64,000 bases of DNA from Perkinsela sp. CCAP 1560/9 (Eukaryota; Protista; Euglenozoa: Kinetoplastea), in contig CBFFSA010000001.1 in the NCBI GenBank assembly GCA_965644495.1, forward strand, positions 1,984,001 through 2,048,000, read 5' to 3'. Position 1 is the first letter of the stretch. Each line of letters starts with the position of its first letter. Positions 6,847-22,244 of this stretch are shown piece by piece. The translations under genes and the position numbers were made by a program. Below the pieces are notes generated by a model that was not told the origin of the DNA, searched no databases, and was given only the letters and a program-made list of their open reading frames with translations.

Positions 6847-7077
6847 TTAGTTTATCTTCCGATAAACTCTACGTGCCGTGCTTACCTCGACCTTGTAATC
6901 TCGGGCGGCGGCGCTTACAGACTTGCCAGCATCCATACTGGCACATAGGTTATTTTTTAGTTGTATGGTAAGATCTACTCGAACCTTCTGCGGCTGCTCA
7001 GCGAGCTGGTAAGATGCATTTAATATTAGTGCGGTGGATGAAGTAGATGAAGTATCATCGGGAAAGGGCAGTTTCAT
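6847..7077 (-). pseudogene. pogo/Tigger-like HTH_psq (CENP-B N-terminal) fragment
   Basis: RVDLTIQLKNNLCASMDAGKSVSAAARDYKVEVSTARRVYRK fits the psq HTH spacing; no DDE domain follows. Confidence 0.6.
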
Positions 7078-7479
7078 GTGGCAACGGTGAGGATAGAGTC
7101 AGTTGGCTCGCGTTAAAGAATAGAAGTGGTTGGGCCATCGGGTATTAAACGAATATTGAAATCAATGAAACTCTACAATTTCTGACCTGGGTTAGTTATC
7201 ATCACAGAGTAGGGATGGGGGGGAATCTGATACCTCCCTTACTTCGCCGCAGACGGAGTGGCTAAGTGTGGTGAAGTAAGGGGGGGGAGTAAGGGGGGGT
7301 AACGGTACGCTCTTTAAGAAGACGATGTGTACCCATCTAGGCTCAAAAACATGCAAAAAGAGCCCATGATTAACACTTATCCCCAACCGAGCCATCACCC
7401 CCTCCACCTCATACCATCTCTGATTCCTGGCGCAGTTTTCTTGGGCCATCTTTTGGGGCGATGTAAAATTGTAAAGACC

Positions 7480-7700
7480 CGTACACACCGCACTCGAATA
7501 ATTTCTGATCGGTCCAAGAGGAATGCGCTTCAACTTGTGTGCCTCAGTTAGGTTACAGCTGGGCCCCTTGGATAACCTGCTGCATCCTTCATTGTTTAAA
7601 ATGCTCGTCACTTTATTAAGAGAACAAGTGCGCCCCTTGTTTTTAACCATTTTATGCACCCAAGAATACGTGGGGCATCCATCAGGGCTCTCATTCTCTT
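7480..7700 (-). pseudogene. Degraded Tc1/IS630-like transposase fragment
   Basis: SILNNEG...KGPSCNLTEAHKLKR resembles the KKPxLTxxHKxxRL linker of Tc1 transposases. Confidence 0.4.
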
Positions 7701-8009
7701 CGTTACCTATGTTTTTTACTGGGGAGATAAATCTTTTTTATGTTTTTTTTCTTTATGGTGATTTTAGAGGGGACAAATCTTTTTCTTTCCACAAGTTGAT
7801 AAATTTTCGTGCTGTGCGGCGGTCACGCCCAAAAGTCGACGCTAATTTGTGAATCGACGTACCGCTTTTCTATTGTTTAATTATTTGCAGTCTCTCAAAC
7901 AGAGGGACAGAGAAAGTAGTTTTATGTGATATGGGGGGGTGTCTTATCTTTCGCCGCTCCATCCCTCAACGTATTCACCACACTTGGGGTTGCTTCGTCT
8001 TGTTTTCCT

Positions 8010-8216
8010 AACGAAAAACAATGGATGTGTTCCAGAAAATGAGTCCAGGGGTCCCCACAAAAAACGTGCGGCAAAGCACTTCGCCAGGGGAACGAGCTCT
8101 ATCCAATGCTGAAAAAGGAGAAAATTCACGTAGTCTTTTTAGATATCAAAAAAAATGAGAAAAAACGGACAAAAAAAGTCAAATTTCTGCGGGGGGGAGA
8201 TATCTTGAAACCACTG
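8010..8216. mobile_element. MITE family A, partial copy (one end only)
   Basis: Ends ...GGGGAGATATCTTGAAACCACTG|TA, like 34030; the internal part aligns to 38067-38428. Confidence 0.8.
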
Positions 8217-8364
8217 TAAGTACGGGGGTGAATTTACTATCTTTTCCTAGAACTTACAAACAAGTAGGGAGATAGTACCTAAAACATTTATAGCATCTAA
8301 AAAAACTTCCCTCTTCCCCCTTCTTCCCTCTTATCTACCTCTCCAACCCCCCCCCGCCTTCCCC

Positions 8365-9304
8365 ATGTTCCCCCTCCGCTACCGTCACCCCGACCACCCC
8401 GGTCTCCACCCCCTCCCCCTCCCCCCCCTCCACCCCCCTCTCCACCCTCCACGCCACCCTCTCCACCCGCGCCAGCATCCCCCTCCACGACCTCCAACTC
8501 CTCTACGGTTTCCCCCCCACCCCCCTCTCCCCCTCCCTCCCCCCCTCCACCCCCCTCGACCGCTCCCCCCTCCCCCCCTCCGGCACCACCCTCACCCTAC
8601 GTCGTCTCTCCCGTGCCCCTCGAGCGACCCAACCCACGGGCCCCTCCCCCTGCGGTACCCCCTATCTCCCCCCCTGCGGCCCCACACGCCTTCCCGTGGT
8701 CCGACACGTCCCCCCCGACCACTCCTGTCTCTTCCACGCGATGGCCTACGTGCTCCACCGTAGCCGCCGTCGTCGTGACCCGGCGGGGATGCGATCACAG
8801 GTCGCCGCTGTGATCGAAGCCAACCCCCGGGAGTTTCATCAAGGGGTGCTGGGGAGGGGGAATGGGGAATATGTGGCGTGGATACAGGGGAGGGGGGCGT
8901 GGGGAGGGGGGGTGGAGGTGGAGGTGCTGGGGGTGTTGTATGGGGTGGAGGTGGTGGTGGTGGTGGTGGAGGAGGACGGGGAGATAGGGGGGACAGAGGA
9001 GATCAAGGGGACAGAGGAGATCAAGGGGACAGGGGAGATCAAGGGGACGGTGGTCCGGTTTTGTCAAAACCGGGGGTACAATACCCGGGTTTTTTTAAAA
9101 TTGGAAAAAGGGCATTATGATGCGTTAGCAATGGCGGTGGGGGGGGGAGGGGAGGAAAGGGATGACCAGGTGGTGTTTAGTGTAACGGACGAGGAGGTGA
9201 TGAGGAAGATGAGGGGGTTGGTGGGATTGGGGCGTGAAGGAGAGGGCGGGAGGAAAAGAGGGAGGGTGGAGTGGGGGAGAGGAGTGAGGGTGGGGAGTGG
9301 GTGA
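8365..9304 (+). CDS. OTU1: OTU1/YOD1-like deubiquitinase (UBX-like plus OTU domain); one frameshift in the C8 run at 8421-8428
   Basis: MFPLRYRHP in frame 1; from about 8432 frame 2 reads TPLSTLHATL...LLYGFPP and is open into VPPDHSCLF (Cys), AWGGGVE and GHYD (His). Confidence 0.8.
8988..9047 (+). repeat. 18-bp tandem repeat x3 (GTEEIK) inside OTU1
   Basis: ggggacagaggagatcaa units. Confidence 0.9.
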
Positions 9305-9492
9305 AGCGATTAGTTGCGTTCAACACCCCCCACCTGTATGTGAGTAAGATAGTTCTGTACATGAAGAAACCGTGATGGAGGGTAATTGGTATGCAATTTT
9401 TTGTGTTATCATTGTAACCTACATCCTTTCCTGTTTCTTTTCTTCCGACACCCCATAAAAGTACATGTCTGATCTACGCAACACCGTCTAAA

Positions 9493-10854
9493 ATGGAAAA
9501 ACTTCACTCTGAGTATGAAACCGGCACGTTCTGCGTCGAGCTCGCCATTCTAAGCCTACATTGTGCTTCGCTGCAGCGCAACAAGGTATACCGTGTGTGC
9601 TGGGTGCGTGGCTCCAACGGGGGCAAGACCCCATATATCGAGTGCATGGACCGTGGCGTGCTACAACTCTCTCCTACCCCCTTGTTCCGCTTCACTACAC
9701 ATCTCAAAAACGCCCCCAAACAGCTCAAATTTAAAATCGAGGAATATCTCTCCCCCAAAGATACAGAAAAGCCCGCCAGAGTCTATGTGGTGCAGTATAA
9801 CTTGCAGAATGCTCACCCTCGGGCACAGCGCCCAACCCACCCCAACGTCGCGGAGCTACGGTTCTACATGGGAGCCTCCGATGCCGTGCTGCGGTTTTAC
9901 TGTCTGTTGTACCGAGAGAAGCACGGCCGTCCCCCACAGCGGCTGTTTACGGACTCTGGAAACGGCGTAGAGACTCAGCGCAATCAGGGGAGTCGTTCTC
10001 CAATTTCTCCGGAACAAGAATTGCCGCAAACAAATTACAACGGGGGTCGTTCAGAGGGTTCGCCAAACAACCATGTGGAAAATTTATCGCGTCGATTGGA
10101 TCATCTGCAGCACGCGTTTGCGGAACTGCGTCAGGAGGTTCGTGGGTTGAAATCGGAGCTGGAAGTTCTTCGCGGCGGGAGAGCGCAGGGTCCAGTAGTC
10201 TTAGAAAAAATGAGTGACCTGGCCACTTCGCAAGCTCCGTTTGGTGTGACATCCAAGAAAACAGAGGTAATGTCGGGGAATACGGCCACTCAACAAAGTA
10301 ATACAAAACCCGTTGTCGAAGGCCGGTGGCGTTCCTTGTCCTTTGGGGAGCCCAGCAAGAGCATGTCAAGCATACCGAGTAATCTGAGCTTTAGCTCGAC
10401 TCACACCGCACCGCCGAAAACGTCGTTCGACCTTGTTGACGCGGACGAGTTCAAGTTTGGTAGCTCAGATGAGTCCTCTGAAAATGGAGACAAACCAAAT
10501 AGCAGAGCAGGATCCGTTGAGCGGATGGTTGGGTCGGATAACACGTTCACAATACAGCCTGCTAAGGAGATCAAAACTAGTGAAATTTTAGCTACATCGA
10601 AATCATACGATACAGAGAGCTCCAAACTGCAGCAGAGGGAAGCCAGCGACAGCAACATCAATCTTCATGAAGATATGTTTTCATCGTTGGCCTCACTTGC
10701 AGTGAATGTTCAAAGTGTTTCACGGACGTCGAAGCCGAATTCGGAGGGTGATCAAGCACCAACAGTTGGAAAGAGCAGCTCCGGACTTTCGAAGCAGAAC
10801 GGCACGGAACAGAAAAGCCCGCAGGATTGGGCTCGTTTTCTTGACTCTGTGTAG
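9493..10854 (+). CDS. NT-C2 (EEIG1/EHBP1-like) domain protein with coiled coil and Ser-rich tail
   Basis: YRVCWVRGS..GKT, FTTHL, KQLKFKIEE beta pattern; heptad region LSRRLDHLQHAFAELRQEVRGL. Confidence 0.55.
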   Translation: MEKLHSEYETGTFCVELAILSLHCASLQRNKVYRVCWVRGSNGGKTPYIECMDRGVLQLSPTPLFRFTTHLKNAPKQLKFKIEEYLSPKDTEKPARVYVVQYNLQNAHPRAQRPTHPNVAELRFYMGASDAVLRFYCLLYREKHGRPPQRLFTDSGNGVETQRNQGSRSPISPEQELPQTNYNGGRSEGSPNNHVENLSRRLDHLQHAFAELRQEVRGLKSELEVLRGGRAQGPVVLEKMSDLATSQAPFGVTSKKTEVMSGNTATQQSNTKPVVEGRWRSLSFGEPSKSMSSIPSNLSFSSTHTAPPKTSFDLVDADEFKFGSSDESSENGDKPNSRAGSVERMVGSDNTFTIQPAKEIKTSEILATSKSYDTESSKLQQREASDSNINLHEDMFSSLASLAVNVQSVSRTSKPNSEGDQAPTVGKSSSGLSKQNGTEQKSPQDWARFLDSV

Positions 10855-11104
10855 ATCACCAGCCAATACTGCCTGTGAGAATCTTGAGAAAATGCTCATC
10901 TACAGAGTTGAGTCTATACATTGTCATACATTGTAGTTCCTCTTATGCAACACAAATCCAAAGACCATAGCACGTAATTCATGTCCTTTTTCGTTATGAT
11001 CATGCTTTTTTATGGCTAGGTATGATTTTGCGATTCATCTCCATTATCGATCCTCACATTTTTTTTCTTATCTTGACCCCTACCTCCTTATTTCCCACCT
11101 CCCC

Positions 11105-14100
11105 ATGCGTCGACTCTACCCCAAACTCCCCTCCCCCCTCTCCACTACCCCTTTCCTCCTACGACACTTCACCGATGCCACGCAATCCCGCAAACCTCAC
11201 CCCCACGAATCCTTCGTCAACGGACTCCAAACCGAGTTCCTTGACAACCTTCTCACCACGTGGCAAACCACCCCAGCGGCCGTCGACCCCTCCTGGCACC
11301 CCATCCTGGAAAAACTCACCCATGCCCGTCCAGAGGATCCCTTAGTGAAATCCTTTGACCGCTCCCAGGCTCTTGCTCAAGGCTCTGCGCTCGAGGACAC
11401 GCTCTCTTCCACTTCTGAAACATCTTGTGCTGCTGCTGCGGCTGCGGCTTTAGCCTCTCGCAAGGACATCATGGATCACTTCAAGGTGACCTGGATGATA
11501 CGTGCCTATGAGGTCCGTGGACACCGCATCGCGGATGTGGACCCGCTGGCCCCCGTGGGAGATCGGGACACGACCCGGGCCCATGAGCTCCAGCTGCAAC
11601 ACTTTGGGTTTCAGGAGAGTGATTTGAGCCGTGAGTTCCATATGGGGGTAATCCCCGCTCTTGGGGGGATACACGCCGCGAATCAAAAAATGACCTTGCG
11701 TGCGATTGTGGAGAAGCTCCACAAAACGTACTGTCAGAAGGTAGGCTATGAGTTTACCCATATTGTGGATGCGCGTCGGGCACGGTGGATGCGGGAGCGT
11801 ATTGCGGCACCGCAGCCCCCGACGGTGGCGGAGAGAAAGGCGTGTTTGCATGATCTTGTGCGTACGTTCTCGTTTGAGCGCACGTTGCTTTCGGAGTTTG
11901 CGGACGCGACACGGTATGGGATTTCCGGTGTAGAGGTACTGATTCCGGTAATGAAACTGCTGGTGCGCCACGCCGCCGCGAGTGGGGTGCGGGAGATTGT
12001 GATTGGCGGCACCCACCGGGGGCGGTTCAACATGCTCGCCCACGTACTGAGCACCGACATGGGGTTTGTACTGCAGCAGCTGTACGATCACAAAAACGGC
12101 ACCCCCCACCGCACCGAGTCCCGCGACATCCTCGCCAACCAAGGCTACGGCCTCGAACGTGCCACCCTTAACGGTGACCGCATCCGTCTCACCCTCCTCC
12201 CCAACGCCACCCACGCCGAGAGCGTAAGCCCCCTCGTCGCGGGCTACGTCCGTGCCCGACAACACTACGACCAAGCCGACCCCCACCGCACCCGTACCCT
12301 CGCCGTCCTCCTCCACGGCGACGGCGGTTTCGCCTCCCAGGGGGTCGCCTACGAGACCACCGGCCTCTCCGACCTCCAGTTCCACAACATCGGCGGCACC
12401 CTCCACCTGGTCCTCAACAACCGTCTCGCCCACACCGCCTCCCCCTCCCAGTACCGCGGCCCCACCGCTGCTGCCGCCTGCACCAACCTCGCCCTCCCCG
12501 TCCAGGCCCCCGTGTTCCACGTCAACGCGGACGACCCCGACGGGGCCCTGCGGGTCGTGCGGCTCGCGCTGGACTACCGCGGGGCGTTCCACCAGGACGC
12601 GATCGTGGACCTGGTGTGCTACCGGGCCCACGGCCACAGCGAGACGGACGACCCGACGGTGGCCCACCCGCAGCTGTACCGCACCGTCGCGCGGCACCCC
12701 GACGTGCTGTCGCAGTACGCGGGGCGGCTGGTGGGGGAGGGGGTGGTGGGGGCGGGGGAGGTCGGGGGGGTGGAGGCGGGGGTGAACCGGGAGCTGCGGG
12801 GGGCGCTGGCGAATGTGAAGAGGGGGAGCGTGAGTGGGTGGGAGAGGGGGGCGAGGGCAGGGGGTACGGGGGCGGGGACGACGGCGACAACGGTGGTGGG
12901 GGGGAGTTGTGTGGCGTTGCCGGGGGTGACGGGGGTGGGGAGGGAGGGGTTGCGGGATTTGGGGAAAAGGTTGGCAAAGCTGCCGGAGGGGTTTGATCCG
13001 CACCCGACGTTGCGGCGGATTTTGGAGGAGAGGGCCAAGCATTATGATTCTGGGGAGGGGTTGGATTGGGGAGCGGCGGAGGCGTTGGCGTTTGCGTCGT
13101 TGCTGCAGGAAGGGGTTCATGTACGGGTCAGTGGGCAAGATGTCGAGCGTGGGACGTTTTCTCACCGGCACGCGCTGTTGGTGGATGTGAACACTGCGAA
13201 GGTGACCATTCCGCTGGCGAATTTCCTGCCTGGGGTCCAGGCCCCGTTTCGGATTGTCAACTCCTCGTTGTCGGAGTATGCCGTCTGTGGATATGAGTTA
13301 GGGTATAGCACGGCGAATCCGAATGCGGTCGTGATCTGGGAAGCGCAATTTGGAGATTTTGCAAACGGTGCCCAGGTGATTTTCGACCAGTATCTGAGCT
13401 CCATGGAGTGGAAATGGGGTACCGCTGTGACTGGGTTGGTGGTGAATCTCCCCCATGGGTACGACGGCATGGGCCCGGAGCACTCCAGCGGGCGAATTGA
13501 GCGGTTTCTACAAGGTAGTGATGATGACGAGGAGCTCCCGATGGCGTTGCTGCGCAAGAACCGCGTCTTGCTGCGTCAAGTCTCTGAGAATCGTGACCTG
13601 AACTTGCTTTACCCCGTGTTGGAGGACATGATTCGCACGTACAACTGGCAGGTGTGCTTCCCCTCGACGCCTGCGAATTACTTCCACGTGCTACGAAGAC
13701 AGGTGCACCGTGCTTTCCGTAAGCCGTTGATTAATTTTTACAGCAAAGCGTTTCTCCGAGCCCCAAACATTTCCAGCTACGCCGAGATGGGGACCGGTAC
13801 GCTCTTCCAGCCGATCATCGATGACCCAAGCGTGACGCACTACGACAAAGTTAAGAAGGTGATCTTGTGCACGGGGCAAATCTATTTCCATCTAAGAAAG
13901 CACCGCGACAGCAGCAAAAAAGCGTGTAAATTGGCTTTGGTACGATTGGAACAACTCTCCCCCTTTCCGTGGCTACACGTAGATGCCGTGCTCTCTCGCT
14001 ACCCGAACAAAGTGGCTATCTCGTGGGCCCAGGAGGAGCCCATGAACATGGGAGCGTGGAACTACGTAGAGCCCCGGCTACATAATCTCCTCTCTTTCCA

Positions 14101-14224
14101 TCACAGGAAAACTACTGTTCGCTACGTGGGACGACCGCCCGCGGCAGCCAGCGCAGTGGGAGCGAAATCCATGCACGATGCCGAGATCGCGCGGTACTTA
14201 GAAGAGGCTATGAGCGGTATTTAG
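11105..14224 (+). CDS. OGDH: 2-oxoglutarate dehydrogenase E1, paralog A (degenerate PP/alpha half-site, canonical Pyr/beta half-site)
   Basis: Full E1o architecture; GQDVERGTFSHRH, SSLSE, WEAQFGDFANGAQ, LPHGYDGMGPEHSSGR intact; ATG 11105 gives an MRRLY presequence (ORF is open from 11012). Confidence 0.92.
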   Translation: MRRLYPKLPSPLSTTPFLLRHFTDATQSRKPHPHESFVNGLQTEFLDNLLTTWQTTPAAVDPSWHPILEKLTHARPEDPLVKSFDRSQALAQGSALEDTLSSTSETSCAAAAAAALASRKDIMDHFKVTWMIRAYEVRGHRIADVDPLAPVGDRDTTRAHELQLQHFGFQESDLSREFHMGVIPALGGIHAANQKMTLRAIVEKLHKTYCQKVGYEFTHIVDARRARWMRERIAAPQPPTVAERKACLHDLVRTFSFERTLLSEFADATRYGISGVEVLIPVMKLLVRHAAASGVREIVIGGTHRGRFNMLAHVLSTDMGFVLQQLYDHKNGTPHRTESRDILANQGYGLERATLNGDRIRLTLLPNATHAESVSPLVAGYVRARQHYDQADPHRTRTLAVLLHGDGGFASQGVAYETTGLSDLQFHNIGGTLHLVLNNRLAHTASPSQYRGPTAAAACTNLALPVQAPVFHVNADDPDGALRVVRLALDYRGAFHQDAIVDLVCYRAHGHSETDDPTVAHPQLYRTVARHPDVLSQYAGRLVGEGVVGAGEVGGVEAGVNRELRGALANVKRGSVSGWERGARAGGTGAGTTATTVVGGSCVALPGVTGVGREGLRDLGKRLAKLPEGFDPHPTLRRILEERAKHYDSGEGLDWGAAEALAFASLLQEGVHVRVSGQDVERGTFSHRHALLVDVNTAKVTIPLANFLPGVQAPFRIVNSSLSEYAVCGYELGYSTANPNAVVIWEAQFGDFANGAQVIFDQYLSSMEWKWGTAVTGLVVNLPHGYDGMGPEHSSGRIERFLQGSDDDEELPMALLRKNRVLLRQVSENRDLNLLYPVLEDMIRTYNWQVCFPSTPANYFHVLRRQVHRAFRKPLINFYSKAFLRAPNISSYAEMGTGTLFQPIIDDPSVTHYDKVKKVILCTGQIYFHLRKHRDSSKKACKLALVRLEQLSPFPWLHVDAVLSRYPNKVAISWAQEEPMNMGAWNYVEPRLHNLLSFHHRKTTVRYVGRPPAAASAVGAKSMHDAEIARYLEEAMSGI

Positions 14225-14405
14225 GGTTCGCTGTGTCTTCAGCAGGGAAGTGCTAATTTTAGATTGAGAATTCTGAACCATTTTTTCATGTAATTCAATG
14301 CATTTTTTTCGTTTCTTACGTTCCCTTAATAATTAAATTTTGTGCTGATAATCTGTTTCTTCCAACTGTCCTATTGAAGCGCTTTGTGATACAATGTATA
14401 CACCA

Positions 14406-14454
14406 ATGACACGTTACATCACTAGGCACTATGACACGTTACATCACTAGGCAC
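14406..14454. repeat. 25-bp tandem duplication between the E1 paralogs
   Basis: atgacacgttacatcactaggcac x2. Confidence 0.9.
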
Positions 14455-14580
14455 AAATAAAATGCGCTTTTCATCAGCCCTTCTGACGACTCTCCATTAT
14501 TTTTACCACAAAACAGTATTTTTCTTCTTTCTCTTCCACACTTCCTCTTCCATTCTTCCTCCCCCCTCTCCCTTCCTTTC

Positions 14581-17562
14581 ATGATGCGACGCGTCACTCC
14601 CCGTCTCCACACCGCCACTCCCCGACGCTACCCCCTCCACCCGTGCGACAACTTCCTTACCCCAGAAAACGCCTCCTATCTCGACACCCTCCCCCCAGAC
14701 ACCGCCCCTCCCCCACCCCACCCTACCCCCAGCCTCGATCCCCCCACCTGGGCCTCTCTCCTTCACAAAGCCGATGACCTCCCACGAGAGCAGCCGTTGC
14801 TACGCTCCACCTTTCGACCGCTCTCTTCTTCTTCATCTTCTTCTCATCCCCACAAATCTTCTTCCCCTTCTTCTCTTCACAACGTTTCTGTGAACTACTC
14901 TATGAGCGAGGCGGCACGGCTAGCCTGGATGTGTCGCGCCTGGCAAGTCCACGGTCACCTCACCGCCACCCTTGACCCGTTGAATTTACACCAAGGCATG
15001 CTGCGGATGCCCGACTCCTTTGGGGTGCGCGTGGAGGAACTCGAGCCCGCGTACTTTGGATTCACCGAGGCCGACCTCGAGCGCTCGTTTTATCTCGGCA
15101 TGTCCTCCACGAAAGGGGGACTGCTCGGGGAGGACACCACCATGACCCTACGGGAGCTCCATGCGAAGTTAAAAAGTATTTATGGACAGAAAATTGGGTA
15201 CCAGTTTATGCATCTCGCGGAGCCGGAGTGTGCAAAATGGTTCCGGGATCGGATCGAGACCCCGGAGCACTATCCGGAGTATTTGGGGTTCTCCACGGAG
15301 GAGAAGCTGGATGTGCTGCATCACCTGGCGCGTGGGGAACTCTTCGAGCAGTTTCTCCACACGAAATTTGTCGGGAGTAAACGGTTTGGGCTGGATGGTG
15401 GGGAGTCGCTGATTCCGGGGATGATGGAAATGATCCAACGCGCGGCCTCTCATGGGGTGGAGCACATTGTGTTGGGGATGCCCCACCGTGGGAGGCTATC
15501 GGTACTCACCAATGTGTGTGGGAAATCCATGGAGGCGCTTTTTAAGGAATTTAAGGGACTCACGCTGGATGATATGCAGGGTGAGGGTTCCGGAGATGTG
15601 AAGTATCACTTGGGGATGACTAACCGACGGGTGTTGAAGAATGGCAGCGCCATCCAGCTCAGTCTGCTTGCGAATCCAAGTCACCTTGAGGCGGTGAACC
15701 CGTTAGTGGAGGGTAAGGCACGGGCGAAGCAACACTGTCTTGGGGACACCTCCCGGGACCGGGTGATGGCCGTCCAGCTGCACGGCGATGCGGCGTTTGC
15801 GGGCCAGGGCGTGTGCTACGAGACCATGGGTCTCGGCGAGTTGGAGTCATTTAGCACTGGGGGAACCATTCATATTGTGGTGAACAACCAGATCGGGTTC
15901 ACCACGGACCCGAAAAAGTCACGCTCCTCCCCGTATTGCACCGATCTCGGGCGTGTGTTTGGGTGTCCGGTGCTGCACGTGAACGGGGATAGCCCAGAGG
16001 ACGTTGCCCGGGTGTTTCGCCTGGCCGCAGATTTCCGTAAAGAGTTCAAAAAATCCATCATCGTCGACCTCGTGTGCTACCGCCGCTTCGGCCACAACGA
16101 GACCGACGAACCCATGTTCACCCAACCCCTCATGTACCGCGCCATCAAAAACCACCCCACCATTCTCACCCAATACACCCAAAAACTCATCTCCGAGAAC
16201 TGCATCACCCCGGAAGAAACCCAAACCCTCCACCACACCATCACCCAAGCCCTCCGCGCCTCCCTCACCCACCTCGACGCCTACACCCTTACCAAATCCG
16301 AGTGGTACGACTCCTACTGGAAAAACTTCCGCAAGGCCTCCCATGTCTTTGCCAAGCTCTACCCCACCCAAGTCTCCGGGGAGGTCCTCCGCGAGCTCTC
16401 CACTCTGGTCATCCAAGTCCCCCCGCGTATTGCGCTTCACCCGAAGTTAGCCTCCCTGTTCAAGGCCCGGCAGCACACGCTGGACACCGGCAAGGGGATC
16501 GGCTGGGCCACGGCAGAGGCCCTGGCCTTTGGGAGTCTCCTGCAGGAGGGGATCCACGTGCGGCTCAGTGGGCAGGACGTCGCGAAGGGGAGCTACCACC
16601 AGCGGCACGCGGTGGTGCGGGACGCGCTGACGGGGGTGGAGTACAGCCCGCTGAAGAACATGTCGAGTGGACGGTTCGTGCTGTGCGACAGCCCCGGGGG
16701 GAACTACGGGGTGCTGGGGTACGAGCTGGGGTACTCCATGGAGAGCCCACAGGCGCTGGTGATCTGGGAGGCCCCGGAGGGGGAGTTGGTGAACAGTGCA
16801 CAGATTGTGGTGGATCAGTTTATTGCGTCCGGGGAGGCGAAGTGGGGTCGGCAGTGTGGGTTGGTGGTGGCGTTGCCGGTGGGGTGTGAGGGGGAGGGAC
16901 CGGATTTGTCGGGGGCTCGGGTGGAGAGGTTTTTGCAGGCGGTGGATGAGGAGGTGGCGGAGGATGCGGAGGGGTATGGGCCGAATTCTCATGCGAGGGT
17001 GAATATGGAGGTGGTGAGCCCGACGACGCCGGCGAATTACTTTCATTTGTTACGGCGCCAAATTCATCGGAATTTTCGTAAGCCGTTGGTGTTGTTCCTG
17101 CCGAAGACCACCGTAGGTAGTGCAAAGGAGGAGTTGGTGGATTCTGAGTTCGCCCCGGTGATCGCGGACGAGGCACGCTGTTCGCCGGATGCCGTGACAA
17201 AGGTGGTGCTGTGCTGTGGTCCGTTTTATTACCGTCTGTGTGAGGCCTTGTCAGACCTCTCGAAAAAGGACGTCGTACTGGTTCGTGTCGAACAGCTTGC
17301 ACCGTTTCCCGACCGCCTTGTGAAGAAACAGCTTGAGCGATTTCCTAAGGCAAAGGTGGTGTGGGCTCAGGAGGAGCCGCGGAATATGGGCGCCTGGAGT
17401 TATGTCCGTCCGCGAATTAACGCCGCACTACGCTGTGGGAAAAGGAAACATTCCGAGTTACAGTATCGAGGACCCCGGGCATGCTCCGTGGTGTGTACCG
17501 GGGACAAGCACATATTCGCACAGCAGCAAAAACAGCTTGTTAAATCAGTGTTCGACGAGTAG
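14581..17562 (+). CDS. OGDH: 2-oxoglutarate dehydrogenase E1, paralog B (canonical PP/alpha half-site, degenerate Pyr/beta half-site)
   Basis: KRFGLDGGE, GMPHRGR, GDVKYHLG, NPSHLE, HGDAAFAGQG, NNQIGFTT, RRFGHNE intact; MMRRV presequence. Confidence 0.93.
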   Translation: MMRRVTPRLHTATPRRYPLHPCDNFLTPENASYLDTLPPDTAPPPPHPTPSLDPPTWASLLHKADDLPREQPLLRSTFRPLSSSSSSSHPHKSSSPSSLHNVSVNYSMSEAARLAWMCRAWQVHGHLTATLDPLNLHQGMLRMPDSFGVRVEELEPAYFGFTEADLERSFYLGMSSTKGGLLGEDTTMTLRELHAKLKSIYGQKIGYQFMHLAEPECAKWFRDRIETPEHYPEYLGFSTEEKLDVLHHLARGELFEQFLHTKFVGSKRFGLDGGESLIPGMMEMIQRAASHGVEHIVLGMPHRGRLSVLTNVCGKSMEALFKEFKGLTLDDMQGEGSGDVKYHLGMTNRRVLKNGSAIQLSLLANPSHLEAVNPLVEGKARAKQHCLGDTSRDRVMAVQLHGDAAFAGQGVCYETMGLGELESFSTGGTIHIVVNNQIGFTTDPKKSRSSPYCTDLGRVFGCPVLHVNGDSPEDVARVFRLAADFRKEFKKSIIVDLVCYRRFGHNETDEPMFTQPLMYRAIKNHPTILTQYTQKLISENCITPEETQTLHHTITQALRASLTHLDAYTLTKSEWYDSYWKNFRKASHVFAKLYPTQVSGEVLRELSTLVIQVPPRIALHPKLASLFKARQHTLDTGKGIGWATAEALAFGSLLQEGIHVRLSGQDVAKGSYHQRHAVVRDALTGVEYSPLKNMSSGRFVLCDSPGGNYGVLGYELGYSMESPQALVIWEAPEGELVNSAQIVVDQFIASGEAKWGRQCGLVVALPVGCEGEGPDLSGARVERFLQAVDEEVAEDAEGYGPNSHARVNMEVVSPTTPANYFHLLRRQIHRNFRKPLVLFLPKTTVGSAKEELVDSEFAPVIADEARCSPDAVTKVVLCCGPFYYRLCEALSDLSKKDVVLVRVEQLAPFPDRLVKKQLERFPKAKVVWAQEEPRNMGAWSYVRPRINAALRCGKRKHSELQYRGPRACSVVCTGDKHIFAQQQKQLVKSVFDE

Positions 17563-17753
17563 GTTCATTTTTTCTTGAGATTTTACAGGTATGAGATGAT
17601 AAATAATGCGCAGGAGGTTTCTTAAGAAGTGTATGTGGAGCTAAGACTCCAATTATGGGTTTTGACTTGTAAGAGCTTATGTAATGAAGTATGTTGCCCC
17701 TCTTGTTTCTAATGCTTTTCTTTCTTCCGTTACATTGATTACATTTCGGTATC

Positions 17754-19406
17754 TTGGACAAACATTTTCATCCGAATTTTCGGATTCTTGTTCAGAATAC
17801 GCATGCAATTATTCTTTGTTTTGGTTGTCTTAGGGATACGCTTGCCTACGTTTTTTGTATCACTAATTTTGCCCTTTTGCATGTTCACCAGTGGGTCACG
17901 GCGGGCCACGGTGGGTCCAGCATATTATGCTTTTGCACCGAGCAAAACTGCGAGCTGTGCCTGTCAGGAACACTTCTCCGGTTGTGCATTTGCTGCCGTC
18001 ATCTGTGGTACCCTTTGCTCCATCAAGTAGACTTCGCTGCTGAAACACTGGATTCACTTGTCAGCTCACAAATTTGCTCTCGCCAAAAAACGTATTTTGA
18101 GTATGTGACCAAGACAGTAGTCCCGTACTTACGTTCTTTAGGAACACCCTCCGATGTTTTCCTCTCACTGGAACTGCTGGAATTAAGGGTTAAAGAGTGT
18201 TTAGGTCATCGAGAACTTTTTATCCCGGAATCGGGAGCTTATAGCGGTTGTACAAAACGTTTCTCGTATTCAGATCGAGCATGTGGCGATGCTTCTATGC
18301 GGTACTCCGGGTGGAAGTTATTTGCTGTTCGATTGCCTAATGCTTTTGTAGCGAAGAGCAGTCGAATGTTATCTTCACAAAGAGCCATACGGCGTAAGAA
18401 AAAATGGCCAATTAAGATTGACTGCAGCTTTCCTCCTTCAAACTCTGCACCACTTTTCATAGAGTGGAAACTTAAAAATGCCACCTTACCTGTTTGGAAT
18501 ACACGCGTCAAAACGCTTAAATTTCTACGATCGGGGTATTGCAACAACGACAACGTCGCGTTACTCTACCGTGTTTGTCACTACTGTCTGAAATATGGAG
18601 CGCCTAGCAACGTATACTGTCCGCTGGAAATCTTTTCGTTAGATTTTTCTCGCGCATGTCGAGCAGTCGCATCGCTTCTGCTGGATTATTTATCCTATTC
18701 TCGCGCGGTACCGTGTCAGTCCATGAACAGCAGAGAGAGACTAAGAGCAAGACAAGATTTTTCTGATACACTAACTGAAACAAATGTCGGTAGGTGGCCT
18801 ATCACACTGCACACTCCTATCCCATCAAGCTACGAAATACTTCACACTATTCCGAGGATCATTGAAATACTGTTTCAAAGTCGCATCCTGCCTTCTCTAC
18901 GGCTTGCACAACAACGAAACCGATTTACCGCACACGGCTTGCTGTGTCTAGAAAAAACGTTAGAAAATCTTATTTTGGTCGAAGGCAGAGAATCCGAAAA
19001 TTACTTGCGTTTCATGCATGATTGTCTTACGCACGTTCTCGAATCGCCTACCGAATTCCCTATTTGTCACCGCACACCAAATAAAAAAATATTGTGCGAA
19101 GAACTGATAAATGAAGAAACTAATAAATGTGAGACTAGTGCAAAAGCCGTTATGTCAAAGTCCAATGCAAGGAGTTCCAAAGAGTTGCTTCAAAACCTGC
19201 AGGCGCTAATCTACAAGGCTAGAGAAATTTATTTCCTTGCCACTTCTGTACGTGACTGCAGTGTTCTCATGGTGGTCCCTTCCTTTTCCCAGGCTGTTTC
19301 CCTTCCGACTGTGTCACTCATCGATTTCGATGACAAAAGCCACAAAGGACTATTACATTATGTCAAGCAAGAGATCGCACTATGTAAAGAGTATCAGAAC
19401 GCTTAG
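17754..19406 (+). CDS. IPK1: Inositol-pentakisphosphate 2-kinase-like; start uncertain
   Basis: WVTAGHGG (about GEGG), IEWKLK (about EIKPK), YCPLEIFS, ATSVRDCSVL, LIDFDDK. Confidence 0.7.
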   Translation: MDKHFHPNFRILVQNTHAIILCFGCLRDTLAYVFCITNFALLHVHQWVTAGHGGSSILCFCTEQNCELCLSGTLLRLCICCRHLWYPLLHQVDFAAETLDSLVSSQICSRQKTYFEYVTKTVVPYLRSLGTPSDVFLSLELLELRVKECLGHRELFIPESGAYSGCTKRFSYSDRACGDASMRYSGWKLFAVRLPNAFVAKSSRMLSSQRAIRRKKKWPIKIDCSFPPSNSAPLFIEWKLKNATLPVWNTRVKTLKFLRSGYCNNDNVALLYRVCHYCLKYGAPSNVYCPLEIFSLDFSRACRAVASLLLDYLSYSRAVPCQSMNSRERLRARQDFSDTLTETNVGRWPITLHTPIPSSYEILHTIPRIIEILFQSRILPSLRLAQQRNRFTAHGLLCLEKTLENLILVEGRESENYLRFMHDCLTHVLESPTEFPICHRTPNKKILCEELINEETNKCETSAKAVMSKSNARSSKELLQNLQALIYKAREIYFLATSVRDCSVLMVVPSFSQAVSLPTVSLIDFDDKSHKGLLHYVKQEIALCKEYQNA

Positions 19407-19503
19407 AAAGCGGTGTGGTCGTCTTTTTAAAAGTCTTTATCGTATTCTCTTTTTTTAGCTCGAAATAACGTACTGAACCAGCAACAACGAATCATTGTCT
19501 ATT

Positions 19504-20130
19504 TTAACAATTATGAAGGACATATTCGGTCGTAGCTGTGGCCGCTGTCAATATCTGAGCGTTGTCACGCTGGATCGCTACCTCGATGGCCATTAGGGCG
19601 TGCTTTATAAAGCCTCTTGGATTTGGAGTTTATCTCCCCAATTTCCTCAAAAAGGAGAGTGTCGCATTTCCCTGTACTCCGAAAACCGTAAATGCTAACG
19701 GGAAGAGGGTCATCCCCTCTCACTTGCCAACCCTCCATACTTCTTGAGTATGTCAGCTTCAGCTTTTTGGGCCGTGCTGCCCGGATATTTGACTTTAACC
19801 TCTACGTAGAAAGCAGCAAATGGTTGACGATGGTTACGTCGACGAGAACAACTTGATTCCCGACTAGCAAGCACACGTCTGGCCCGCTTCCATCCTCGAA
19901 ACGCGGTTCGTGAGGGTCTGGACGGAAGCCATGTTGACGGAGTATGCGCAGGAAGCACTCTTTAACAAGTGCGTGGCGTGTTGCTGCTATCTTGCCTCGG
20001 ACTCGGCGGCCCATGTATCGCAAATTTATCACTTGGGTAGGATTCACCGCAGGTGCATTGAATTTCTTGCCTGAATGATGGCGGAAGGAGGTAACAACGT
20101 CGGAGAGCTGTCTGCCACTCTGAGTTCGAC
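19504..20130 (-). mobile_element. 3' fragment of a CRE/SLACS/CZAR-like non-LTR retrotransposon (Zn knuckle plus REL endonuclease), degenerate
   Basis: Across frameshifts: CTCGE..H, TRHALVK, HEPR, GPDV, VDVTIVN, AE..ILKKY, FPLAFTVFG, IEVAIQRDNA. Confidence 0.75.
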
Positions 20131-20241
20131 ATCATGTATTCTCTTTTTAAAATTTCAGCTGTAAAAATCTTTTTACGTTCAATACGGGTTACAATACTCT
20201 AAACAGAAAAAAGAATAGTTTTGAGTTTTCGCTGTTTCTCA

Positions 20242-21195
20242 ATGGTATCAGCAGAGTCTCTGTTTCACCAAATCGACTCACAACAATTCATAACCACTCG
20301 GCTAGCTGAGATATGCTGGGAGAGATTGCAGGAGAGTATTGAGGACAAAGTAGCTACGCTCGTCAGCCAGTACGTAAAGAAGCATGCCGTTCCCTCCAAC
20401 CGTGGGCTTCTTCGAGATATTTACATTGCACGAGCCACAGATGCTCTGATGTCCTCCATTTGCGATTTCTCGCTGAACAATAGCGCGAAGCAAAATTCTC
20501 CATCTGTAAACTCAGCAAACTCCAAAGCAAATGAGCCGAATCGGCTAAGAGAGTATGTTGTACGAGAGTCGTGCGAACTATTATGTGCGCCTGGGCCATC
20601 TGGAATGGAATACTTGCAAAATGAAACTCAGTTTTCGGAGACCGTCTACAAGGCAATGGAACAGAGCTTACGAGAGTTGCAAAGAAAAGAACAGGAAGAC
20701 TATCTTAAGCTCTGGACGGAGCTTGATGAGGTTTCTTCACGTCGAGGGCACGTTCACTCAACGCGCGAAAATGAAAAAGTATCTGAAAGAAGCAAAGCTG
20801 TTTACTCAAAGAAAAAATCTCGTCCAGATTTGTCGATGAAGAAACGTGTGCTGCAAAAACCAACGTCTATCAAAGAGGAAACGGTGGAAATCTTAAAAAG
20901 GGAACATCCTTTATCTCCTCAAAAAGTTTCAGAAGCGAAGGCACACAAAAATAGAGAAACGGGAAACTCTAGGAACGTGAGTACGAAGAGTGTATCTTCA
21001 AAAAGCTCTAGCACTGATGAAAGAGTCGCTATGAAAGAGGCACAAAGAACTGATGCAGCTGTCCCTACCAAATCGCGTCGCGTTCGCGTGCTTCTCCGAA
21101 GCTCACACGAAGCACCATATGAAAGGTCGCCTCCTGAAAACAAAATTTTTATCAAACGAGGTGTAAAAATAGTTCCTCCTTCAATAGGAAACTAG
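20242..21195 (+). CDS. Hypothetical protein
   Basis: About 317-aa ORF with helical N-half and basic disordered C-half. Confidence 0.6.
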   Translation: MVSAESLFHQIDSQQFITTRLAEICWERLQESIEDKVATLVSQYVKKHAVPSNRGLLRDIYIARATDALMSSICDFSLNNSAKQNSPSVNSANSKANEPNRLREYVVRESCELLCAPGPSGMEYLQNETQFSETVYKAMEQSLRELQRKEQEDYLKLWTELDEVSSRRGHVHSTRENEKVSERSKAVYSKKKSRPDLSMKKRVLQKPTSIKEETVEILKREHPLSPQKVSEAKAHKNRETGNSRNVSTKSVSSKSSSTDERVAMKEAQRTDAAVPTKSRRVRVLLRSSHEAPYERSPPENKIFIKRGVKIVPPSIGN

Positions 21196-21372
21196 TGTGC
21201 GATTTCGGATTGCATTCACCTTTTTTTGTATTGCACAAACATAATGTATATGCTCTTTTTCCTCATTTTCTCCATTACTTCACCAACGCTTTTCCCTTCC
21301 CCATTATCACCCTATTTTGATAAAAACAAAAACGATAGTTTTCCTTCCCTACCCATTCTACCCCACCACAAC

Positions 21373-21972
21373 ATGTGCATCCTCGCTCACCGCCGCAAAC
21401 TGCGTAAATCCAGCCGTCGTCAACCCACCCACTTGGACGACGAGATCGCAAAAGCCCTCTACGACCTGGAGCTTCACCATCGTAAACTTAAAAACGCCCT
21501 CACCCCGCTTCACATCACCGGGGTCAAAGAGTTCCCCGTGGGGCGCACCCACCGCTGTGTGGTCGTTTACTACCCGCTGCGATTCATGCGAAAGATGCAT
21601 AAAATCCAGTCCGCACTCATCGCCGAGCTCGAGAAGAAGTTCAGCGGGAAGCAGTTTGTGCTGCTGGCCTCACGCAAGGTGATCCAGCGCCCCAAGTGTG
21701 TGTATAAGGCCCAGGAGGTGCCACGCTCGCACACGATGACCGCCGTGCACGAGTCGCTGCTCAGTGACCTGGTCTACCCGTTAGATGTGGTCGCCCAGCG
21801 TACCCGGCACAGTGTCGACGGGACGAAACAGCTGAAGGTGTTTCTCGATGCCAAGGAGAAGGAGAAGGTGGAGAACCGGATCGAGACCTACGCGGCGGTG
21901 TACAAAAAATTGACCGGGAAGGATACCGCGTTCGGGTTTATGACCAACGCTGCGCTGCAGCAGGTGCTGTAG
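21373..21972 (+). CDS. RPS7: 40S ribosomal protein S7 (eS7)
   Basis: LIAELEKKFSGK, PRSHTMTAVHESLLSDLVYP, VYKKLTGK; ATG at 21373. Confidence 0.96.
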   Translation: MCILAHRRKLRKSSRRQPTHLDDEIAKALYDLELHHRKLKNALTPLHITGVKEFPVGRTHRCVVVYYPLRFMRKMHKIQSALIAELEKKFSGKQFVLLASRKVIQRPKCVYKAQEVPRSHTMTAVHESLLSDLVYPLDVVAQRTRHSVDGTKQLKVFLDAKEKEKVENRIETYAAVYKKLTGKDTAFGFMTNAALQQVL

Positions 21973-22244
21973 CAAGGTGGCGGTCGTGTATGAATGAGAA
22001 AAAAAGAGGAAGAGAGTAGAAAGAGGATAAGGTGATGATAAGGAGGAAAAGGAAGTGTGGTGATTTAAGTTAGAAAATAGCTGAACAAAAGTTTTAAATG
22101 TGAAATGTAAAAGTCTATCGTAGAAAATGATTTCTAAGAAAAAAATGCCGAACCTCATACGCATCATGGTTTTACATCAATTACGGTATTTCCCTGGAAA
22201 AAACAATCCTTAGTCGTATTTTTTTGTATTCTCATCTCCAAATT

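Follow-up and report, generated by a model that had tools for sequence, protein, structure and literature searches.

The 64,000-nucleotide stretch of Perkinsela sp. CCAP 1560/9 DNA analysed here (hereafter the window) carries two adjacent genes, A and B, for paralogs of the E1 component of 2-oxoglutarate dehydrogenase (E1o), and opposite halves of the active site have eroded in the two proteins. In A the diphosphate/substrate (PP) domain has decayed and in B the pyrimidine-binding (Pyr) domain; given the site geometry described for a close homolog (PMC7340257), the paralogs lack different residues of one interface site and are complete only together. The most probable explanation, to which we assign a probability of roughly 0.78, is that A and B form an obligate heterodimer with one complete thiamine diphosphate (ThDP) site, made from B-PP and A-Pyr, and one vestigial site. 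That A and B pair, that their composite site is active and that neither homodimer works are predictions made from the sequences and their comparison. The relevant features of the window are:

11105..14224, plus strand: paralog A, E1o-like, 1039 amino acids, full length and stop-free; the PP domain has decayed, whereas the Pyr and C-terminal domains are canonical.
11873..12823, plus strand: PP (diphosphate/substrate) domain of A, residues 257-573, eroded.
13058..13756, plus strand: Pyr (pyrimidine-binding) domain of A, residues 652-884, with canonical ERGTFSHRH, SSLSE, AQFGDF and PHGYDGMGPEHSS.
14225..14580, plus strand: spacer between A and B, with a polypyrimidine tract and a short tandem duplication (sequence read directly).
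14581..17562, plus strand: paralog B, E1o-like, 993 amino acids, full length and stop-free; PP domain canonical, Pyr domain eroded.
15343..16260, plus strand: PP domain of B, residues 255-560, all 73 family-conserved positions retained in four of four genomes.
16495..17112, plus strand: Pyr domain of B, residues 639-844, eroded.

By sequence, architecture and predicted fold, both proteins are E1o. The initial annotation had described two full-length genes without stops, and as open reading frames (ORFs) they do match E1o structures end to end, the structure-library hits 8i0k and 7wgr covering the full length (A, E = 7e-192; B, E = 4e-211). Each contains the Pfam domains E1_dh (PP), Transket_pyr (Pyr) and OxoGdeHyase_C, and each exceeds the NCBIfam cut-offs of 764 and 770 bits for the E1o equivalog models TIGR00239 and PRK09404 (894 and 851 bits for A, 977 and 917 for B). 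AlphaFold2 (AF2) monomer models have a predicted local distance difference test score (pLDDT) of 85.2 for A and 84.8 for B, with target-normalised template modelling (TM) scores to E1o structures of 0.91-0.93 and 0.91-0.94, respectively; even the eroded Pyr domain of B is predicted at pLDDT 70-96 throughout. The pair thus shares its four domains with the canonical enzymes (E. coli SucA 2jgd, human OGDH 7wgr/8i0k, M. smegmatis KGD, human DHTKD1 6sy1; E 1e-190 to 1e-211, TM 0.91-0.94), as well as the inter-subunit ThDP site (PMC7340257) and, in this genome, the same family of E2o partner. Since the full set of catalytic residues is absent from each, neither A nor B was classified as a self-sufficient E1o.

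That each ThDP site is shared between subunits was the premise of the original proposal, and the DHTKD1 structure bears it out: one subunit holds the ThDP diphosphate in its alpha/beta1 (PP) domain, the other holds the pyrimidine in its alpha/beta2 (Pyr) domain, and the Glu that activates ThDP and the His of loop 3 belong to the Pyr side (PMC7340257). Because every site draws on two subunits, B-PP and A-Pyr together make a complete one, while a site made from A-PP and B-Pyr would lack loop 1, the Glu, the aromatic pocket and the equivalents of both H298 and H729.

All the motif changes first noticed in the two proteins are present in their sequences. A is degenerate at TRYGISG, RDILAN, NATHAE and NNRLAHTA and canonical at SSLSE, AQFGDF and PHGYDGMGPEHSS; B is canonical at KRFGLDG, GDVKYH, NPSHLE and NNQIGFTT and degenerate at SPGGN, APEGEL, PVGCEGEGPDLSG and AKGSY. 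Residue equivalences were fixed by alignment to E. coli SucA (2jgd), in which H260 is the histidine of HRGR, H298 that of GDVKYH and H729 that of EHSS. The alignment gives N345 in A for H298, and in B N708 for the Glu of SxLSE and L776 for H729, in line with the loss first noted of the H298 equivalent in one paralog and of the ThDP-activating Glu and a His in the other. The H260 equivalent is retained by both (H304 in A, H302 in B). The H260/H298/H729 triad is therefore complete in neither chain (H304, N345, H793 in A; H302, H343, L776 in B), only when B-PP and A-Pyr are combined.

The surrounding residues follow the same division. The Mg-ThDP diphosphate site (HGD...NN, loop 1 Q-I/V-G-F-T-T, NPSHLE) is complete in B and partial in A, whose PP domain has lost F271, K343, H345 (now N), P368/S369/L371 of NPSHLE and loop-1 Q440/G442/F443/T445 while retaining H304, HGD406, N438/N439 and GH511. 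The activating Glu and the aromatic pocket QFGDF are both present in A (E724, AQFGDF) and both missing from B (N708, APEGEL), where the Pyr changes comprise Glu to N708, Q732P, F733E, F736L, H767V, H776L and R669K/T671S/F672Y. B does keep D745, R780 and R783, which, mapped by their spacing from the loop-3 His, are the counterparts of D677, R712 and R715 of DHTKD1, an invariant salt bridge at the two-fold axis (PMC7340257).

The erosion can be quantified at family-conserved sites. These are alignment columns with conservation of 94% or more among 35 canonical E1o proteins, a set drawn from animals, fungi, plants, amoebae, bacteria, diplonemids and other kinetoplastids. Such sites in the PP domain are retained at 48/73 in A against 73/73 in B (Fisher p = 5e-9), and those in the Pyr domain at 61/62 in A against 46/62 in B (p = 1e-4). 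Nothing comparable was found in the 35 other sampled E1o proteins, which include the nearest outgroups of both paralogs.

The pattern recurs in related genomes. The closest relatives of B are from Perkinsela sp. CCAP 1560/4 and two further ENA assemblies (55-56% identity), and in all three of these Perkinsela-type genomes an A-type gene lies immediately 5' of the B-type gene, as in the window. There too B-PP is intact (73/73) and A-Pyr nearly so (59-60/62), with only 40-43 of 73 sites kept in A-PP and 35-40 of 62 in B-Pyr (Fisher p 5e-6 to 2e-12); the ThDP-activating Glu and the QFGDF feature are gone from all three B proteins. Counted as losses, the window lacks 25/73 conserved sites in A-PP, versus 30-33/73 in the Perkinsela-type genomes, and 16/62 in B-Pyr, versus 22-27/62. 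It is difficult to see why just these complementary halves should be conserved across four diverged genomes if they did not function together.

A second assembly (L009; ENA ERZ24900291, contig ctg3871l) matches the window at 99.05% identity over 15.3 kb (window 6938-22224), with 106 mismatches and 13 gaps, and probably represents a different strain or haplotype of this species. In it each ORF is unbroken and the motifs are identical; the substitutions, whose absence from raw reads would have counted against the proposal, are thus present in an independent assembly as well. Codon differences between L009 and the window are mostly silent, with 10 synonymous and 3 non-synonymous in A and 10 and 1 in B (20 and 4 in total); one of the A replacements falls within the eroded NPSHLE motif. 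An assembly artefact was considered and rejected, since the L009 assembly and three orthologous loci show the same pattern. As to contamination, nothing resembling human sequence was encountered. The automatic gene calls of L009 split both E1o genes into fragments.

In the proposed mechanism, A and B, as ancient kinetoplastid E1o paralogs, would have become mutually dependent in the lineage leading to the window organism and Perkinsela. They would pair across the usual E1o two-fold interface in such a way that one inter-subunit pocket is complete: B-PP would provide the Mg-ThDP diphosphate ligands and the substrate His residues H302 and H343 (the H260 and H298 equivalents), along with D403 and N436, and A-Pyr would provide the activating Glu E724, the aromatic pyrimidine pocket and loop-3 H784 and H793 (the H729 equivalent). 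In this composite pocket 2-oxoglutarate would be decarboxylated and the lipoyl arm of the retained E2o succinylated. The symmetry-related pocket, A-PP plus B-Pyr, would be vestigial, and A:A and B:B dimers would have two defective sites apiece.

The rest of the genome is compatible with such an arrangement. The initial annotation had named a third, fully canonical E1o elsewhere, with A and B unexpressed, as something that would undermine the heterodimer; none was found beyond A and B in the 21-Mb, 110-contig host assembly, where the other Transket_pyr matches are two ORFs of E1-beta size (383 and 393 amino acids) and one of 708 amino acids, taken from its size to be transketolase. A succinyltransferase E2o is present, above the sucB equivalog cut-off (466 bits), with 66% identity to the Perkinsela CCAP 1560/4 protein and 65-70% to two ENA proteins that we take to come from the related assemblies; these homologues all have lipoyl and catalytic domains. 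With an E2o and no third E1o, the pathway context fits the heterodimer.

Another possibility is that A and B, whether as homodimers or as a heterodimer, are both catalytically dead, with some structural or moonlighting role, E1o activity having been lost in a reduced lineage. Each protein does lack residues regarded as essential, Perkinsela is a reduced endosymbiont (PMC5601477), and the T. brucei alpha-KDE1 is reported to be glycosomal, a location outside the Krebs cycle (review PMC9512073). But dead proteins would have no reason to keep B-PP at 73/73 and A-Pyr at 59-61/62 while the opposite halves drift, and an E2o with a lipoyl domain has been retained both here and in Perkinsela sp. CCAP 1560/4; we consider this explanation very improbable.

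How the eroded halves have changed is informative as well. Between the window and the Perkinsela-type genomes, PP identity is 75-76% for B and 40-42% for A, and Pyr identity 68-72% for A and 57-62% for B. Measured from the last canonical relative, A lies about 4 times farther away than B in a tree of the N-terminal halves, and B about 2 times farther than A in a tree of the C-terminal halves. At sites lost in all four genomes, the replacement residues differ between the window and Perkinsela at 14 of 19 A-PP positions and 11 of 13 B-Pyr positions: the H298 equivalent, for example, is N/Q/Q/Q across the four genomes, and the activating Glu is N/S/A/A. Such differing replacements are the signature of relaxed selection rather than of a new conserved function. 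With the retained halves essentially invariant, they are what would be expected if selection maintained a single composite site, B-PP/A-Pyr, and let the other drift.

This bears on a further alternative, in which A and B form separate homodimers with changed chemistry, A:A having a new 2-oxo acid pocket and B:B being a Glu-independent decarboxylase. In A the Pyr half is complete and both the Mg ligands and the H260 equivalent are still there, and ThDP catalysis without the Glu does exist, in glyoxylate carboligase. A change of substrate also has a parallel in the mammalian E1o paralog DHTKD1 (PMC7340257). The 14 of 19 always-changed A-PP sites that differ between the window and the Perkinsela-type genomes nevertheless look like drift; A lacks the loop-1 residues that bind the ThDP diphosphate, and in B the aromatic pocket has gone together with the Glu and two His residues. 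Two mirror-image neofunctionalisations would moreover be less parsimonious than one heterodimer, and there is little likelihood that this is the explanation.

A comparison of dN/dS domain by domain, proposed at the outset as a check, was only partly informative. It indicates purifying selection, with omega ~0.1 in every domain for the orthologous loci L007 and L008, the sole pair with unsaturated dS; the contrast between domains is weak, and for the other pairs NG86 dS is undefined or >2. Because of this saturation, the contrast between halves was drawn instead from dN, identities, site counts and branch lengths. Since omega is ~0.1 in every domain of the L007/L008 pair, the eroded domains evidently are still constrained as folds. 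A and B have been retained together under purifying selection, as shown by the tandem pair in four genomes, by omega ~0.1 and by the 20 versus 4 codon changes. Pseudogenes were rejected on account of the intact ORFs, the omega of ~0.1 and the confident predicted fold.

Several points weigh against an obligate heterodimer with a single working site. Glyoxylate carboligase is a ThDP enzyme that works without an activating Glu, so that loss of the Glu alone is no proof that a B:B dimer is dead. The domain contrast in omega is weak, with dS saturated in all species pairs but one. A third E1o copy may sit in unassembled sequence. Finally, A retains the Mg/diphosphate ligands HGD and NN in four of four genomes, and the second site is perhaps not empty.

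The last of these had been entered as a caveat in the initial annotation, according to which A keeps HGD, NN and GH, and this is true of all four A proteins. Since they keep both the Mg ligands (HGD, NN) and the loop-2 GH, the vestigial site may still be able to hold a diphosphate ligand. A variant of the heterodimer would accordingly have the A-PP/B-Pyr pocket serving as a regulatory or structural site that binds Mg-ThDP or another diphosphate nucleotide. HGD, NN, GH511 and 35 of the 73 PP positions are kept in four of four A proteins, five derived residues are common to all four, and omega is ~0.1 even in the eroded domains of the closest pair. The retained residues may, however, be needed just for the fold, and the ThDP-holding residues of loop 1 and NPSHLE have been lost, as has the pyrimidine pocket of B; this variant seems to us improbable.

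The preferred reading, a heterodimer with one complete and one vestigial site, raises the question of when the two paralogs became interdependent. Whole-length and half-protein trees each recover two kinetoplastid E1o clades. In the A clade, which adjoins the trypanosome A-type, P0001, a metagenomic protein with canonical motifs, is followed by window A together with its Perkinsela-type counterparts; in the B clade, which adjoins the trypanosome B-type, the canonical protein of the prokinetoplastid PhF-6, presumably free-living, is followed by window B and the Perkinsela-type B proteins. The window organism itself is probably a prokinetoplastid, sister to the Perkinsela clade. Canonical copies are thus present in the nearest outside relatives (PhF-6 for B, P0001 for A), as they are in trypanosomes and diplonemids; the two Diplonema copies shift in placement between whole-length and half trees. 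From the two-clade topology, the duplication is older than the split of prokinetoplastids and trypanosomatids, and the copies long remained canonical. Because the nearest outside relatives are canonical, the erosion is lineage-specific on an old duplication: among the sampled proteins, only those of the window organism and of Perkinsela have decayed reciprocally.

Two E1o paralogs are retained in all sampled kinetoplastids, Trypanosoma included (by annotation Tb927.11.9980 and Tb927.11.1450 in T. brucei). Reciprocal decay needs mixed dimers beforehand, and E1o could therefore have been an A:B heterodimer across Kinetoplastea already, with the Perkinsela lineage exposing an ancestral heteromer, an idea that we regard as tentative and on balance doubtful. 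The trypanosomatid paralogs show no early reciprocal drift: in A-clade and B-clade proteins from outside the eroded lineage, few conserved sites have been lost, and similarly in both domains, an observation that is silent on whether heterodimers form there. An ambiguous lead comes from procyclic T. brucei, in which a KDH-null line was obtained by deleting "KDH-E2 (Tb927.11.9980)" (PMC7951978). Other sources list Tb927.11.9980 as the E1 component and Tb927.11.11680 as E2 (PMC12589498, PMC6299225), so either the gene identifier or the name KDH-E2 in that report is wrong. If the identifier is right, one E1 paralog cannot stand in for the other, and a single paralog is essential for KDH activity.

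As far as we found, structures and the searchable literature alike present E1o and its relatives solely as symmetric homodimers. The initial annotation knew of no report of such an E1o, and searchable literature on E1o heterodimers and pseudoenzymes likewise gave nothing relevant; the word heterodimer is absent from a 2021 review of E1o and E1a assemblies (PMC8146983). Nor was literature linking Perkinsela with E1o found, the Perkinsela genome paper (PMC5601477) and the euglenozoan metabolism paper both being silent on it. The pair would differ from the canonical homodimers, with their two equivalent sites, in having a complete site only in the mixed dimer, and just one.

The closest precedent is the trypanosomatid deoxyhypusine synthase, a kinetoplastid pair of paralogs, each impaired alone, with an interface site formed from both, so that in each heterodimer one site is live and the other dead (PMC10216422; PMC3663545). 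It belongs to another enzyme family with another cofactor and pathway, and its complementation has been shown biochemically and structurally, whereas the E1o case is built on sequence and comparison; and the E1o losses are unlike those of deoxyhypusine synthase in being organised by whole domains (PP versus Pyr). The kinetoplastid prozymes (AdoMetDC/prozyme, PRMT1 ENZ/PRO) are likewise duplicated enzymes that need a degenerate paralog (PMC5201418, bioRxiv 10.1101/776112), but there one enzyme is paired with one dead activator, while A and B are both half-dead and would both contribute catalytic residues. In the alpha2beta2 E1 enzymes for pyruvate and branched-chain substrates, PP and Pyr lie on different polypeptides and the site is formed from both (PMC7340257); those alpha and beta chains are short and both sites are active, while A and B are full-length chains, each with a decayed, unused domain.

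If the prediction is right, the pair would be an unusually clean case of degenerative complementation (a constructive-neutral ratchet) within one oligomer, proceeding by whole domains and datable on the tree, and it would add an enzyme of central metabolism to the kinetoplastid theme of prozymes and deoxyhypusine synthase. ThDP E1 enzymes are the classic example of half-of-the-sites or alternating-sites catalysis, for which cross-talk between the two cofactors has been proposed; a natural single-site E1o would be a ready test of the need for such inter-site communication. It would also yield a concrete prediction for the two E1o paralogs of trypanosomatid parasites.

The window is gene-dense, with every long ORF on the plus strand. 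Downstream of the pair, synteny with the Perkinsela-type genomes extends through IPK1, Leo1 and a DEAD helicase (window 17754-19406; L007/L008 13008-14308). Intergenic regions are several-fold longer in the window than in the Perkinsela-type genomes.

The longest ORF of A begins at an ATG at 11012, 31 codons 5' of 11105, and a polypyrimidine tract at 11050-11104 lies directly 5' of the start at 11105. Because the tract ends just 5' of 11105 and the orthologues begin alike, 11105 is the likelier start; the extension at 11012-11104 is probably not translated, as its ATG precedes the tract and the orthologues have no counterpart to it. Another long polypyrimidine tract, at ~14515-14580, lies directly 5' of the ATG of B. 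The tracts before A and B look like kinetoplastid trans-splicing signals, and if they function as such, A and B would be separate mRNAs of one polycistron. The spacer between the genes also contains, at ~14405-14455, a tandem duplication of ~26 nt in two copies, the unit ending ...cacgttacatcactaggcac.

The linker between the PP and Pyr domains of A holds a Gly/Ala/Thr-rich low-complexity insert (window 12830-12920, residues ~575-605) that is predicted to be disordered (pLDDT 34-46) and is not found in the Perkinsela-type A proteins; it sits where the GC content of the window is highest (63%).

Besides the E2o, the genome may retain further 2-oxo acid dehydrogenase complexes, as suggested by extra E2 proteins together with the two Transket_pyr matches of E1-beta size. 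Three E2 acyltransferases were located (G000:C16:98315-98998, G000:C6:771603-772265 and G000:C16:143720-144433), of which one is a clear E2o, one is nearest a pyruvate dehydrogenase E2 model (357 bits against a cut-off of 445) and the third, of 537 amino acids, is below all cut-offs.

Attachment of E1 to the E2 core may be asymmetric as well. The region of human E1o corresponding to PF16078 is described as binding E2o and E3 (PMC8146983). This N-terminal segment gives a weak match in A (11105-11330) and in the A clade and no match in B (14581-14900), where just a degenerate version is retained; with the segment weak in one paralog and degenerate in the other, A and B may differ in how they are anchored.

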